DNA of 61,691 nt, counting the filler, from Syncephalis fuscata S228 (lineage: Eukaryota; Fungi; Zoopagomycota), in the NCBI GenBank assembly GCA_025786725.1. It is 5 parts of 5 records of this genome, joined end to end, with 100 filler letters (N's around TTAATTAATTAA, not from the genome) between each part and the next. Parts side by side here need not be neighbours in the genome. Positions count along the whole stretch, not along the records: positions 58,756 to 61,691 come from JAHLTZ010000350.1; 4 more parts are not named here. One strand, given 5' to 3'. Of the stretch, positions 7,335 through 61,691 are shown piece after piece. Each line of letters opens with the position of its first letter. The stretch's first letter is position 1. The notes below the pieces were generated by a model that saw only the letters and a program-made list of their open reading frames with translations, ran no database searches and was not told where the DNA came from. The position numbers and the translations under genes are program-made.

Positions 7335-8318
7335 TTACTTCGTACTAATAGAATTGCCATTTGTAGGCACTTCCATTTCGTAGAAGCGGCATAAATGACG
7401 TTCAGCTCTTCGGTATTCGCGTTTAAGCCGTGCCAATAGTTCAATACCACGAGCAAGTGCAGCATCATCGTCAATCTCGGGAAGACTTGCTTCATCGGCA
7501 CTGGCCCGACTATGCTGGATCTTTTCACAAGTATCCTCGACCTTTTGGAGACCAAGTGTTGCCGAGCTGCCCTTTAAGAAATGGCCAAGTTTGGCATAGC
7601 TTTCTAGGTTCTTATCCTCACTATATATATATATATATATATATGTGTATATAATATGATTAGTTTAATAATAACATTATTAATAACAAATAACAATAAT
7701 AACAATAATAAATAATAACAGTCATATGGCTATATACTAATGGTTATTGTCATTCTATTACTTACATTGCTTTATCCATTTCACCAAATGTTGTATGAGC
7801 TTGTTCAAAAAAGTTGATAACAATGGATTTTGAGAATTCATGCTCGTCATCGTCATCCATTTCAAGTAGCTGTCCAAATACTGCATCGTTGATAATATCA
7901 TCGCCATCATCGTCGTCTTCTTCTTCTTCGTCGTCTTCTTCTTCAATTTCCTTCTTTGCTAATGCCTCAGTTTGGGCATTTTTAGCCTTATCATCCTCCT
8001 TCTCATTTGCAACTACTGGCGCGGTCTCCTATTGGTTATTTACAAATATATGCGCATTGTTAGTCGATATGCAATCATGCAGCATAAGCAAGCAGTGGTC
8101 GAATCAATCTATCATAAAGTGCATACCTCGGTTAAAGAGTTAGCCGTATTAGCCACGTCTCCGCCTTTTGTTGCAGCCAACTTGCTGTTAGTTGCTTCTG
8201 CAGCACCATCCTTTGCAGATATATCTGCTGCTGTTGATGCTGCTGCCACTACTGCAGTTGCTGTCTCGCTTTGTGCATTCTGCGTAATAATAGTGGTGGT
8301 TAGCATACAGTGTTGCAT
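7335..8318 (-). CDS. YPD1: Histidine phosphotransfer (HPt) protein, Ypd1/Mpr1-like, with Ala/Thr- and acid-rich N-terminal extension
   Basis: Spliced exons give VFGQLLEMDDDEHEFSKSIVINFFEQAHTTFGEMDKA..LGHFLKGSSATLGLQKVEDTCEKIQH, containing the HPt phospho-His motif HFLKGSS. Start codon uncertain (8318 or 8306). Confidence 0.88.
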
Positions 8319-11300
8319 AAACAATGCCTTCCTTTCGCCACGCCATAGATTGGATAGACCCAGGAATGAACCAAGGCGACCCGGTCTATTCTATCACGCA
8401 AGCATGGCGAATAGAAGAAAAAGGTCTGATGATGACTAGTATACTTGCCTTGGTAGCCATTATCGCAGTATATAAATCTACGTATGATAATTTATCCTTG
8501 AAAAATGAAACCTGCGGCAATCTTGTGGCAAAAGCAAAGAAAACAAGAAACAAAGTTTAGTGAGTGAATACCAAGTAAAAAAGGAAGACAAGCACTATTT
8601 TATAGGCGAATGACGCAATACAATTCCAATACGATGAAATAGCGTCAAGCCCGATACAAAGATAGAAAGAGGTGGCGGTAGCTATGAAAGACAGACGTGG
8701 CACACCGACAGCTGTCTCTTGCTTTCTTCAAGCTGACGCTGACTTGCCCGTAAAATAAAGAACTAGATTGTTCGAAAATACAAAAGATACAATAGCAAAT
8801 AGAAAGTGCTACTGATTCGTAAAAAAAGCTTCCAAATCACGCGAACTTGCACAGTGATAGTGGGAAAGTAGGACAACAATCTGAAATGGTAAGAAGTAGT
8901 AGCTGCCCAGCCGTTACAGTGAGTATGGCAATTACACAAGTGGTTTGTTGACGCTAAGCCTAATCTGGTAACGTCAGAGTTAAAGATTGAGAAATAAAGA
9001 AGAATTGGACGGTGCACGAGGGGTCACTCGGTCGGTCAACAACGACAGTAATCGATGAATAGAAAGAAGATGCAGAAGAGTTGAAAGAACAAACGCGTCT
9101 GAGTTATGACTATTAGGTGGGGTATCATTTATAGATGTGTATTTATATGTGTATATGTACATATTTGTATTAACACCACCCATATTATATTATATGTATT
9201 ATACATAGTATACATTTTATACATATTATATATATATGATATCAATTAATAAATTAAAATTAAAAGTGTACTAATAACTATTCAAAACGCTTATAAATAT
9301 AATACAACTACTTTGATAAACAAGTAATAACCAACACCAGTATTAATGTATATATATATATATATACAGTAACTATACTAAAACACACACACGCACACTT
9401 CTAACTAACAAGTTATTTGAAAACATGACCCATCCATATTGATATTTACATTGTCATAAACAAGTATGGCTGGTTAGTCATAATGACACCTTATACTAAC
9501 AACACAAATTATGTCACAAGTGGAAAGACGCTTTGTTACATACATGGATATTCATAGATATTGATAAAAGAGGAATAATAACAATAACAATAAACATAAC
9601 AGCCGTCACCTTCAATTACTTACCCGTGACATCCACTCAATAACCGACATGGCTCAATAGCAAGTAGAAAAGGTAGGAAAAGCAGATTTAACGGATCATA
9701 ATGAGCACGAGCGTTGGAATAGTAAAGATGGCCGTTGTATCCAAAATACATCATGTCATATGGCGACGATGGCAATGATTGCGTATTTGTGGTCTGGACG
9801 GACGGCAAAGAAGTATAGGTCATCGATTCGCCCATATCTATTATCAGCTTACTTGATAGTTAAGTAATAAACAATGACCTTGTAATATAGTGGTAGTAGT
9901 CAATAATGGTTACTATCTAGGCAAAAAAAGGAAATCTAATTAGACTAATAATAAAATCAGTCCTGGGTGGGTGGTGGGGTTCAATGCAACTGGACAAAAG
10001 GCCAGAATAAAGATAGTACGGGTTTATAACAAAGGCGAGAGTAACGACGATCAATAGAAAATAGATTCGCGTTATATACGAAAATGGTTGTCAAAATAAA
10101 CAAGTGACTAGAATGGAGCAATATAAAAGTTTAAACGCAACGGTAAAAAACGAACGCAATAGTGTAGAAGGAGCAATAGTGAATCGATATAGTAGAGGCG
10201 ACAGTAGTGAAAATAATAATAATAGACGATATAGAAAACAGTATAAAAACGAAAGACTATGACGATGGACGGTATAGAATGATACTAGTTCGGAGGACGA
10301 GTCCAACGACTTTGCCAACAAATAGGAACTATTTATACATAATTAGAAAGCTTGAATTATGAGTTCCGGGTATTTGAATTGCAGGACAGACACGCATGCG
10401 CACACGCGACAGTATAATGGATTTAATAAGGAAAGCTTGTTTGTAATAATATGTTATTAATCAACAACATATTGCTTATATCATTCTAGTAATTAACTAA
10501 TTAACTAATTAAATTAAATTATTTATTAAATCTATGTATGTGTATATTTTATTGCTAATGGCACTTTTAATAATTAAATTGCCAATGTTAATAGATGAAA
10601 ACGTCAGCGGTTTAATTGAACGGCAGCAGCGGTAGACGCAGCAGCAAACGCAGACGCAAAAGCAAGTCGGATGAATATCATGCAATGCATTAACCATGAA
10701 TGCATCGACTAATGAATAGAAAAAGTCAATAGCCATTTTGTTGTTGTTGTTGTTGTTGTCGTAAATTGACTAATTGAGTGAATGAATGGAATTTGTAAAA
10801 TTGAACCTGCAGTTATCTGTCCTCACTCATTCAATCATTCAATTACACTCATACTTCGTATGCAGCCATTTTCTACTACCTTTTCTCCGCCTTATCCGAT
10901 GTATTTTCGTTTGTGTTCACCATCGCTTGTTCTTACTCGTTCCTGCCATCTGAATCTGACAAAATCGCCGAATCTCTGCAGCCTCCCTTGCTTCTATAGG
11001 ACGTAGACACCCAACCAACCACCACCCAGTCACAGAGAGAGAGAAAGACGGAGAGAGGGAGAAAGTAAGTGCGCGTGATTGGCCAACCGATACGCAGAGT
11101 GCCGTTGAGAAACAACAGAGCAACCTATACATACAGAGTGTGAGTGAGCGACATATACAGAGACAGAGACATATACAGAGAGAGAGAGTCAATGTACACG
11201 CGTGTACCCGAACCAAAGGCGTCATGTCCCTTTGTTGTGAACCCTTGTAGACTTATTGGCTACAAGTAGTAATATTCTACCGGTTAATCCCTGATACATG

Positions 11301-58755: not shown

Positions 58756-59418
58756 TTGTATATTGATTGACTATGCACTAAATATATATCGCGCATTTTG
58801 TGGTTTATAACTTGTATTAATAGCTCGTAAGTGGCATTGTATATTGATTGACTATGCACTAAATACATATCACGCATTTTGTGTGTTTGATAACTTGTAT
58901 TAATAGCTGGTAAGTATTATATATTGATTGACTATGCACTAAATATATATCACGCATTTTGTTTGTTTGATGACTTGTATTAATAGGTCGTGAGTAGTAT
59001 TATATATTGATTGACTATGCACTAAATACATATCACGCACTTTGTGTGTTTGATGACTTGTATTAATAGCTGGTAAGTGACATTGTATATTGATTGACTA
59101 TGCACTAAATATATATCACGCACTTTGTGTGTTTATAACTTGTATTAACAGCTAGTAAGTGGCATTTTATATTGATTGACTATGCACTAAATACATATCA
59201 CGCACTTTGTGTGTTTATAACTTGTATTAATAGCTCGTAAGTGGCACTATATGTTGATTGACTATGCACTAAATATATATCACACACTTTGTGTGTTTGA
59301 TGACTTGCATTAATAGCTGGTAAGTGACATTGTATATTGATTGACTATGCACTAAATACATATCACGCACTTTGTGTGTTTATAACTTGTATTAACAGCT
59401 AGTAAGTAGTATTATATA
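58756..59418 (+). repeat. Homogeneous 80-83 bp tandem array (intron plus 3-nt exon), with a 247-bp higher-order period
   Basis: Unit TATATTGATTGACTATGCACTAAATAYATATCACGCAYTTTGTGTGTTT(G)ATRACTTGTATTAAYAG-NNN-GTAAGT repeated 8 times. Confidence 0.95.
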
Positions 59419-59477
59419 ATGCTAACTTATATGTTAACACATAATATTTTATATATTTATGCATGATTATAGACTAA
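58756..59477 (+). CDS. 3' part of a second 3-nt microexon gene (locus B); predicted ..xPGPATPAN*; 5' end lost in the gap
   Basis: Eight YAG-NNN-GTRAGT units: CTC 58824, CTG 58907, GTC 58987, CTG 59070, CTA 59152, CTC 59234, CTG 59317, CTA 59399. Terminal exon TAG|AC TAA at 59473-59477. The terminal exon and 3' UTR are homologous to those of locus A. Confidence 0.78.
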
Positions 59478-60162
59478 CCGGTGCATTCAAGACATTAGCA
59501 TTGATAGTATAATTAAACTGCAAGTTACATATATTTTAGGTATATATTTGGCAAGAATCAAGATCATTTGGCAACTACGCCATTCGGTCCATTCATCTAC
59601 CAAGTCCCAGCCAATGCCCCCGTTTATTCAACCTTTAATCAATGGACACATTATATTATCAACAAGTCTGTATTTGTCTGCACATACTCAGCTATGCAAA
59701 CTTGTAGTAATAAACATATGGTTCCAGCTTAATTATGCTTCATTAAGCTCTTATAGCTATGTTTACATTCTATTCGCTTACAAAGACTAGCAAACATTAA
59801 TTAATTAATATATCGACAATAGATTTATTCAAGTGCGTTATGCTAGTGAACAATGTAAACTAAAGTAACTGTAATGCTATTATCATTCAAATAACAATTT
59901 AGTGTTTGATTATTTACAAATTTACTATAAGTACTAAAATTAAAATATCAATATTTATCAATATATCTTAGTTCATGAGAATGTAATTAAATTATTTGAA
60001 ATATATATTTTCCTTATTTTTGTTTGTGCTATTAAACAAATAATGTATAAACAGACTAATAGTCAACATATTGCGTAAATAATGTTGTATTAAGTTATCA
60101 AATTCACGATATAGCTAGCAATATAGTTTATTAATTTAACAGTTCAGCTGCCATTTGTGCTA

Positions 60163-60749
60163 TTATTTTTGGTTTTCTTGTAGATGTTTCTGAAATAACT
60201 CCAATAAATGTTTAATGCCATCTTTAGCTATAATTGTTGCTGCTTTGCTAGCAGCTTTAGTGACAATAGGCACAACAAGCGTGCTGACAACAGATCCTGC
60301 GGCAAAACCAACAGGGCCAGATAATGCAGTGATACCTGTTGTAACTCCCATGCCAGCTGCGGCACCTATTGTAGAGCTTGTCGCAGGCGAAGCTAGCTCA
60401 CCCTTGAACTGAATGGTCTTTTCCTTGATTTTTTTACCAATGCGGCGAAATGTCTCGTAAGCCTTTCTTTTGAACGATGCCATGTCATTGGCATTTGGGT
60501 CATGAAAAGTATTGGCAGTAGGTAGATGTGACTTGCTGCGCAGCTGACTAGACTCTTCTTCAGCTTTATGACCAATAGTCTTGAACATTTGATCCAACTC
60601 GTTTCCAATCGAGCTAACAGCATTGAATAGCTGGGGAATTGTTTGAATTTCAAAACCCTTTGTGAAATAGGAGTTGCTCCTATGATGGCAATTGAAGAAT
60701 GGGTAACGAGCAAAACTGCCAGCAACAAAAGACAATTAAAGGGAAGCAT
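60163..60749 (-). CDS. Putative secreted protein with a C-terminal Gly/Ala-rich hydrophobic (glycine-zipper-like) segment; one frameshift near 60655-60665
   Basis: Signal peptide MLPFNCLLLLAVLLVTHSSIAIIGA-TPISQ lies in one frame. The body GFEIQTIPQLFNAVSSIGNELDQMFK..GAAAGMGVTTGITALSGPVGFAAGSVVSTLVVPIV.. lies in the next. One added base at the AAAGGGTTTT run joins them. Confidence 0.55.
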
Positions 60750-61691
60750 ATTAGAAGAATGATAGCAGAATAATTATAATTATAATTATCTAATATTTGT
60801 TTGTCAAAAATATTGGAAATTATTATATCACAAGCCTAGTGTAAATGTTGTAAAAGAAGTTAAATAATAAAGAAAAATTGAATGGTGGAGTCGTCACAGT
60901 TAATTCAATAGGCAATAATTAAAGTAGAATATAATAATTGAACCCGAAGCAATTACAGGCATTAATTTATAGTCTTTCAGTTTCATATTCAATTTTCTAT
61001 TTAGTTCCAATCCACTAATAACAAATTTCGGTAAAATGAATAGACGGTTTGAATATACAGCCATAAAATCAAATATTGGCCTATAGCGGCTATTATTTGA
61101 TTAAAATGAAATAAAAACATGATATTATTCAATAATATATGCTGTACACTCTCATAGCTTGCCTTAGAGATGCCTTTTGCTGACCTTACTCGTTTCTTTA
61201 AAATCATAAAGCAAATATTAAGGCCTATAATAATCAAACAATCAACAGCAATCATGTGCTGTAATTCTCTATTTCATAACTCGACACAAATATTTTATTA
61301 TTGCAAATAAGCAATCAGTTGCGTTCATATAGCAATTAATTAGCCCATTATTATGTAGATAGAATACTGCGTTAAAGTTTTAGCCATGTCTATTGACAAA
61401 CGAATAATTGTAGGTTTAATTCCAACACATGCCAGGCGTAACATACCAACTATTTGCCATGAAATAAACCGGTGACCTAAGCCGTATTGATACAGTCGTT
61501 TAATACTAATAGTACACTGCTTCATCTTTATTGTAACACAATCATTGAATAACCAAAATTGATCTATTATTAGTAGTGTTACAAGCAAAAATGTAGGTGT
61601 CATTAGCTATGCTTGTAATTTAGTCAATTATTGGACACGATTGACACTATATCGATGCAATTACCATTAGTATGCATTATATAGTCTACGC

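Follow-up and report, generated by a model that had tools for sequence, protein, structure and literature searches.

In the truffle Tuber melanosporum, the NACHT-ANK ("nank") genes contain tens of alternatively spliced 3-bp mini-exons, for which the available text of the sources gives cDNA evidence (Iotti 2012, Fungal Biol 116:261; PMC4986451, PMC9815663, PMC10197012). The same mini-exons are also cited in the accessible part of a further article (PMC3689799), and the excerpted text of another terms the design lineage-specific to truffles (PMC13449251). The microexon-array design is therefore not new, being already known from these truffle NLR genes; beyond Tuber, we found no other description of tandem 3-nt exons in the literature searched.

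More distant parallels come from animals. The ratchet points of long Drosophila introns are zero-length exons, which leave nothing in the mRNA. Exons of schistosome MEGs and of bicycle genes measure approximately 6–36 nt or more and do not come as tandem repeats of a single intron unit. Schistosome MEGs and aphid bicycle genes code for secreted proteins through many symmetric microexons of a single phase, the skipping of which gives variants, as described in the available text of the sources (PMC5825161, PMC9168663).

The locus described here belongs to the fungus Syncephalis fuscata S228 (GCA_025786725.1) and lies in the last piece (58756–61691, from JAHLTZ010000350.1; 31% GC) of the window, by which we mean the whole 61,691-nucleotide stretch of DNA that was analyzed, filler included. 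Tandem Repeats Finder reported a tandem array at 58759–59418 with a period of 83, 8.0 copies, and 89–91% matches, together with higher-order periods of 165 and 247, the latter (247 bp) corresponding to a block of three units. An earlier note on this DNA had claimed that every unit of the 82-bp minisatellite contains the motif YAG-NNN-GTRAGT, and this was borne out by a regular-expression scan, which found exactly one such motif in each of the eight units. Runs of three successive motifs spaced 60–90 nt apart numbered three in the window, compared with 0.00 in 100 shuffles. Read as introns and exons, the array (58756–59401, plus strand) comprises eight units, each consisting of an intron of approximately 79 nt and a 3-nt slot; it is cut by the edge of the piece at 58756, upstream of which lies an assembly gap, so the number of units is at least eight.

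All slots are on the plus strand, and their series agrees exactly with the one given earlier. It begins with CTC at 58824–58826 (TAG / CTC / GTAAGT), CTG at 58907–58909 (TAG / CTG / GTAAGT), and GTC at 58987–58989 (TAG / GTC / GTGAGT), continues with CTG at 59070–59072 (CCG in a DNA-run variant, 59071 T>C), CTA at 59152–59154 (CAG / CTA / GTAAGT), CTC at 59234–59236, and CTG at 59317–59319, and closes with CTA at 59399–59401 (CAG / CTA / GTAAGT). Indels vary the length of the unit introns between 77 and 80 nt, and the slot is constantly 3 nt. AG is absent from the interiors of the unit introns over 72–75 nt and from that of the last intron over 63 nt; among the AG-to-AG gaps in the flanking sequence, only about 5% reach 60 nt or more. 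Judged from the sequence, both the constant slot and the AG-free interiors favor real introns, the support from the latter being modest.

Downstream of the eighth slot, a candidate last intron of 71 nt (59402–59472, plus strand) starts with GTAAGT and ends in TATAG. Its likeness to the repeat is limited to the first 20 nt or so; it carries a branch-like GCTAAC at approximately 59421–59426 and contains no AG from 59410 until the terminal TATAG. This candidate is a non-repeat link between the array and non-repeat sequence, a layout seen also at real arrays described below, such as those of L037 and L007. As had been proposed, the segment that follows TATAG starts at 59473 and has the sequence ACTAACCGG; it marks the start of a candidate downstream, or "terminal," exon, and is low-copy over 59473–59539 (plus strand). 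The terminal-exon pattern gave 0 matches in the metagenome contigs searched, and Rfam, tRNA, and repeat scans of 58756–61691 showed nothing notable. We rejected three other explanations of the piece: coding by the minus strand of the repeat, in which stops close every unit; a SINE, tRNA-derived element, or known noncoding RNA, for none of which there was a match; and recursive splicing, since all units have 3 nt between AG and GT.

From this anatomy, and by analogy with the systems above, we consider on balance that the array is probably a genuine, young array of codon-sized microexons, spliced and expressed in a single phase. Each unit would then be one spliceosomal intron of approximately 79 nt plus one exon of 3 nt, while being physically a minisatellite. 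Short introns of this kind would be recognized singly, by intron definition, and spliced out in succession, because 3′ and 5′ splice sites lying 3 nt apart cannot be occupied at the same time. The triplets would thereby be stitched into a short peptide segment of low complexity. As a unit contributes exactly 3 nt and the phase is common to all introns, the gain or loss of units, or the skipping of exons, would keep the reading frame. Units would be gained and lost by unequal crossing-over, making the segment cheaply variable in both length and sequence. The microexons, at least eight in number, would make up the 3′ portion of a gene that starts past the assembly gap.

How much weight the repeated splice sites can bear depends on the kinship of the units. 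Pairwise identity between units is approximately 84–99%, and amplification has proceeded partly as three-unit blocks; the units are thus recent copies with a higher-order repeat, and the eight splice-site pairs do not count as independent events. For the same reason, the retention of splice sites in all eight says little about selection. Twenty of 83 aligned columns are variable (two of three in the slot and 18 of 80 in the intron). Within the slot, there is one change at position 1 and none at position 2, and position 3 has C in three units, G in three, and A in two; as position 3 is tied with one intron column for the highest variability, this array does not show the slot to be hypervariable. 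Slot diversity is low, with four types of triplet and CTN in seven of the eight units.

Another explanation is that the locus is an ordinary minisatellite whose resemblance to splice sites arose by chance and has nothing to do with splicing. The units do lie head to tail and have a higher-order period, as in a plain minisatellite, an arrangement that is equally compatible with microexons. A 12-nt motif in one unit would suffice, since amplification spreads it to all; from base composition, approximately 0.2% of 82-nt units drawn at random are estimated to contain YAGNNNGTRAGT, and minisatellites are numerous in a genome. Trivial satellites whose slots do not vary (TAA, for example) were likewise among the results of our scan for the same architecture elsewhere (see below). 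Chance resemblance nonetheless accounts poorly for the last intron, which is independent of the repeat and brings a GTAAGT, a branch-like site, an AG-free interior, and a YAG of its own. Nor does it account for the sharing of only the slot-centered module (58807–58872) with other contigs of the DNA run X1, or for the demonstrated coding use of the design in many other genomes and in the literature. We regard this explanation as quite improbable.

X1, a small, low-coverage DNA run, was the sole match when sequencing runs were searched for this stretch, with no RNA run among the results; its contigs cover only 58756–59735 of the window. Some of these contigs match just the slot-centered module, at approximately 58807–58872, and then diverge, from which it follows that other arrays share the junction with this one and not the intron interior. 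The earlier note had gone further, proposing a gene family in which one chassis carries unrelated peptide cargo, a proposal that rests on a claimed homology to a locus A outside 58756–61691; the sharing of the slot-centered module alone among other X1 arrays fits the family part of that proposal, and the "peptide cargo" reading of the array is in our view doubtful.

Metagenome contigs were scanned for the bare architecture, by a pattern that contains no family sequence (GTAAGT, 60–90 nt, YAG NNN GTAAGT, 60–90 nt, YAG NNN GTAAGT). At least 120 contigs matched, and the matches listed fall into two groups. One consists of short-period or (TAAG)n-like satellites, in which the slots are constant and often TAA; the other consists of clean arrays with a spacing of 50–125 nt and varied slots. 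From the matches listed we assembled a clean set of 54 arrays with at least three slot types each, on 29 contigs and with 538 slots. Stop triplets occupy none of the 538 slots, against approximately 7% expected from composition; when the slots are concatenated, stops fall at 22 of 484 and 64 of 484 positions in the two remaining frames. These clean arrays are read one codon per exon, in phase 0.

L121 has 48 consecutive units that retain GTAAGT, a CTGAC branch site, a pyrimidine tract, and CAG, with an interior identity of approximately 83%; the intron varies between 54 and 77 nt (unit 57–80), and the slot is constantly 3 nt. Conservation within the unit is lowest at the slot in six arrays (0.36–0.7, with one column at 0.94), whose intron interiors have values of 0.77–0.93. 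The outer microexons of L037 are flanked by unrelated introns and so are not a by-product of satellite amplification. Arrays stand directly downstream of NACHT open reading frames (ORFs) in L049 and L029 and of P-loop GTPase ORFs in L037, L047, and L100; among the matches listed, varied-slot arrays in phase 0 occur in L084, L080, and L050 as well, and the contigs have 33–57% GC. These five NACHT- or GTPase-linked arrays look like the Tuber nank class. A separate case is L017 (14–3177), with 45 consecutive units of 70–80 nt and a slot that is always GGA; if spliced, it would give a 45-residue polyglycine with one exon per residue.

A second class of arrays, lying before protein-kinase genes of Glomeromycotina (Rhizophagus) type, came to light among the AT-rich contigs, of which there are nine (17–22% GC) among the matches listed. 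One of these (L003) is doubtful; the other eight have intron units of approximately 91 nt that are mutually homologous. In L007 (minus strand), an exon with ATG ends one base into a codon and is followed by 18 microexons, as traced by a script that moved to the next YAG-NNN-GT; phase 1 is stop-free from there into the N-terminal exon of a kinase (..NFSNWTSKNKFIDKF..LEWIPYNKF..GGFSTIY..), the whole forming one ORF. In L021 and L081 no phase but phase 1 reaches the kinase, the other two running into stops. In L085 and L122 the ATG exon and the next normal exons all have phase-1 ends, and the reading goes on through the microexons. The kinase domain of L081 matches Pfam Pkinase (2e-25), and its best named relatives are kinases of Rhizophagus irregularis and R. 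clarus, at 56–60% identity. Contig L122 is itself R. clarus (GCA_003203555.1, BEXD01004059.1; array region 8040–10340), and there the annotated gene model (P0120) begins within the last intron of the array, so that the array was missed. We found no description of such phase-1, kinase-linked microexon arrays in the literature searched.

Two features of the R. clarus contig are recorded here in their own right. A 41-nt minisatellite occupies 9680–9950 of L122, in a long intron after the microexon array. The array comes into frame with the annotated kinase exon only via an extra tiny exon, for which there is a 1-nt candidate at approximately 10205.

Broken or complicated arrays do therefore occur, as the R. 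clarus array has no clean in-frame link to its annotated kinase exon, and this bears on a further possibility for the S. fuscata locus. The array could be a decayed or inert copy, that is, a descendant of real units that was recently amplified and is unexpressed or pseudogenized, or else one that is skipped as a whole, with no peptide made. Its youth, seen in the three-unit higher-order repeat and the low slot diversity, would suit such a history, as would the dispersed repeat that lies directly downstream and the failure to find an RNA run with this stretch; the latter is no evidence of silence, the search having yielded one small DNA run. Decay is harder to reconcile with consensus signals that are perfect, and interiors that are free of AG, in all eight units and the last intron; we consider an inert copy unlikely, though far from negligible.

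The three phases give quite different products. In phase 1 the slots read x-P-G-P-A-T-P-A-N with a stop, TAA, at 59475–59477, and the reading xPGPATPAN* put forward in the earlier note (x|CT C|CT G|GT ... A|AC TAA) is arithmetically correct. In phase 2 the product is S-W-S-C-Y-S-C, ended by a TAA that straddles the last slot and 59473. Phase 0 yields L-L-V-L-L-L-L-L before entering an open frame of 105 codons at 59473–59787, closed by TAG at 59788–59790 (59473–59790 with the stop, plus strand). There is no stop triplet across the eight slots in any of the three phases, and counting stops in the slots is thus uninformative on phase here; in older arrays elsewhere, the freedom from stops and the greater variability of the slots are both plain.

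Should the array be spliced, we would give phase 1, with a tail ..P-G-P-A-T-P-A-N and the rest as 3′ untranslated region, about an even chance of being right; phase 0, with a leucine run into the open frame at 59473–59787, is a serious but more tentative candidate, and phase 2 is improbable. Our lean toward phase 1 is slight. In its favor, every codon in phase 1 ends in T, as expected at 31% GC; the variant 59071 T>C (CCG) is synonymous in phase 1 and changes Leu to Pro in phase 0; and the AT-rich, kinase-linked class of fungal arrays reads in phase 1. The immediate TAA 2 nt past 59473 is compatible with a terminal exon and proves nothing.

If the microexons were instead read in phase 0, their Leu and Val codons would form a hydrophobic run, membrane- or signal-like, leading into a terminal exon of 105 residues (59473–59787). 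The 105-codon frame opens exactly at the 3′ splice site and is open in a proportion of just 0.0016 of dinucleotide shuffles, and the remaining five frames contain 7–11 stops each. Variation of the slots at the wobble position, synonymous for Leu, is the classic phase-0 pattern; phase 0 is also the phase of the large NACHT/GTPase-linked class of arrays, and the frame of the ORF stays open in a paralogue. Several observations weigh on the other side. The Leu codons CTC and CTG are unusual at 31% GC, and searches with the predicted product found neither a homologue nor a Pfam family nor an Atlas match. Approximately 200 nt of the ORF, or two thirds, lie within a separate dispersed repeat that is joined to other sequence at 59535. 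Compared with the paralogue, the ORF has 11 non-synonymous and four synonymous codons, and its substitutions are spread 6:6:6 over the codon positions, a pattern that looks neutral; that another frame there also stays open, for 71 codons, suggests an effect of composition. On this evidence we regard a hydrophobic phase-0 product with a long terminal exon as unlikely.

The dispersed repeat was delimited with X1. Depth in this run is 31.6 in the bin 59540–59637, versus 3.6 in the bin 59442–59539; a paralogue contig, 88% identical, spans 59545–59734; and one contig switches to foreign sequence at 59535. The jump in depth, the paralogue, and the junction at this loose end together indicate that 59540–59735 (plus strand) is a separate dispersed repeat of higher copy number.

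With the phases set out, the comparison with the described systems can be made closely. Like the Tuber nank genes, as far as the available text on these describes them, the locus would have many 3-nt exons between short canonical introns, and its frame neutrality would likewise let alternative splicing and unit turnover diversify a peptide segment. It differs from them in its genome of 31% GC, in that no NACHT or ANK sequence is seen within the piece (the upstream part lying beyond the gap), in what lies downstream (a short exon or stop, then a dispersed repeat, then a convergent orphan gene), and possibly in its phase (1 instead of 0). With the Glomeromycotina kinase arrays it shares AT-richness, 3-nt exons, introns of approximately 80–110 nt, GTAAGT, a CTAA-type branch site, and ..TTAATAG. 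Those arrays lie 5′ of the kinase and are read into it, whereas the array in the window, in phase 1, ends the ORF; neither a kinase nor any other Pfam match was found downstream of it in 59473–61691. An nhmmer profile of 51 units of the shared ~91-nt Glomeromycotina type scored 0–2 bits against this array, below the shuffled 95th percentile of 3.2, and its unit had no significant similarity to any metagenome array fetched. A 16-mer resemblance noticed by eye was dropped, the similarity not being significant.

The animal systems are more remote. Relative to schistosome MEGs and bicycle genes, which are found in animal lineages, the exons here are 3 nt long and there is no sequence relation, and the signal-peptide exon of the MEGs is not visible within the piece. 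With ratchet points the array has in common juxtaposed 3′ and 5′ splice sites that would need sequential use; it differs in the 3 nt that separate AG from GT in every unit.

What had been proposed for the locus is supported in part. That a minisatellite of this build can be a coding, microexon-bearing design holds in Tuber and in the metagenome arrays. The kinase-linked arrays are read in phase 1, and the phase that was proposed for the window is thus one used by a real class of arrays; at the S. fuscata locus itself it is a proposed phase, to which phase 0 is a serious alternative.

Wider distribution of the design, in Glomeromycotina kinases and many metagenome contigs, is a more interesting by-product of this analysis than the locus in the window. 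Here it recurs across many contigs unrelated to one another and is read in two phases, against the truffle-specific view in the literature. Gene predictors do not see arrays of 3-nt exons, and whole protein segments are consequently missing from fungal annotations. Should the locus in the window be expressed, the design would reach as far as a short terminal peptide of an AT-rich genome, and there would be a simple model in which unequal crossing-over and splicing vary a peptide residue by residue. A broader and speculative reading, which we think unlikely to hold as a whole, is that the minisatellite of intron plus one codon is a general fungal device for short, frame-neutral, variable peptides, used in phase 0 after NACHT or GTPase domains, ahead of Glomeromycotina kinases in phase 1, and here, likewise in phase 1, for the mature portion of a small secreted peptide rich in Pro, Ala, and Thr. 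Were this so, stochastic exon skipping would allow one gene to give a family of peptides.

The remainder of the piece carries candidate genes on the minus strand. Five ORFs of the window had no exact counterpart in the gene-position index. At 60163–60749 lies a convergent orphan gene, apart from the array gene, with a signal-peptide-like start (ATG at 60749) in one frame and, in another, an ORF of 190 codons with a Gly-zipper-like C-terminus. We found no convincing intron to join the two frames, the best candidate being 26 nt long (GTTTTG..CCCCAG), and the break is possibly a frameshift caused by an assembly indel, or the mark of a pseudogene. Searches with the orphan gene gave no word-based homologue, no Atlas match, and in Pfam only a marginal EMC6; its sole relative, detected with HMMER, is P0001 (37% identity), from a JGI metagenome contig (L001) that carries fungal-type TACTAAC introns. 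Beyond it, at 60900–61603 (minus strand), are three hydrophobic ORFs of 54–87 codons in two frames; they had no Pfam match, and they are possibly exons encoding a multi-pass membrane protein.
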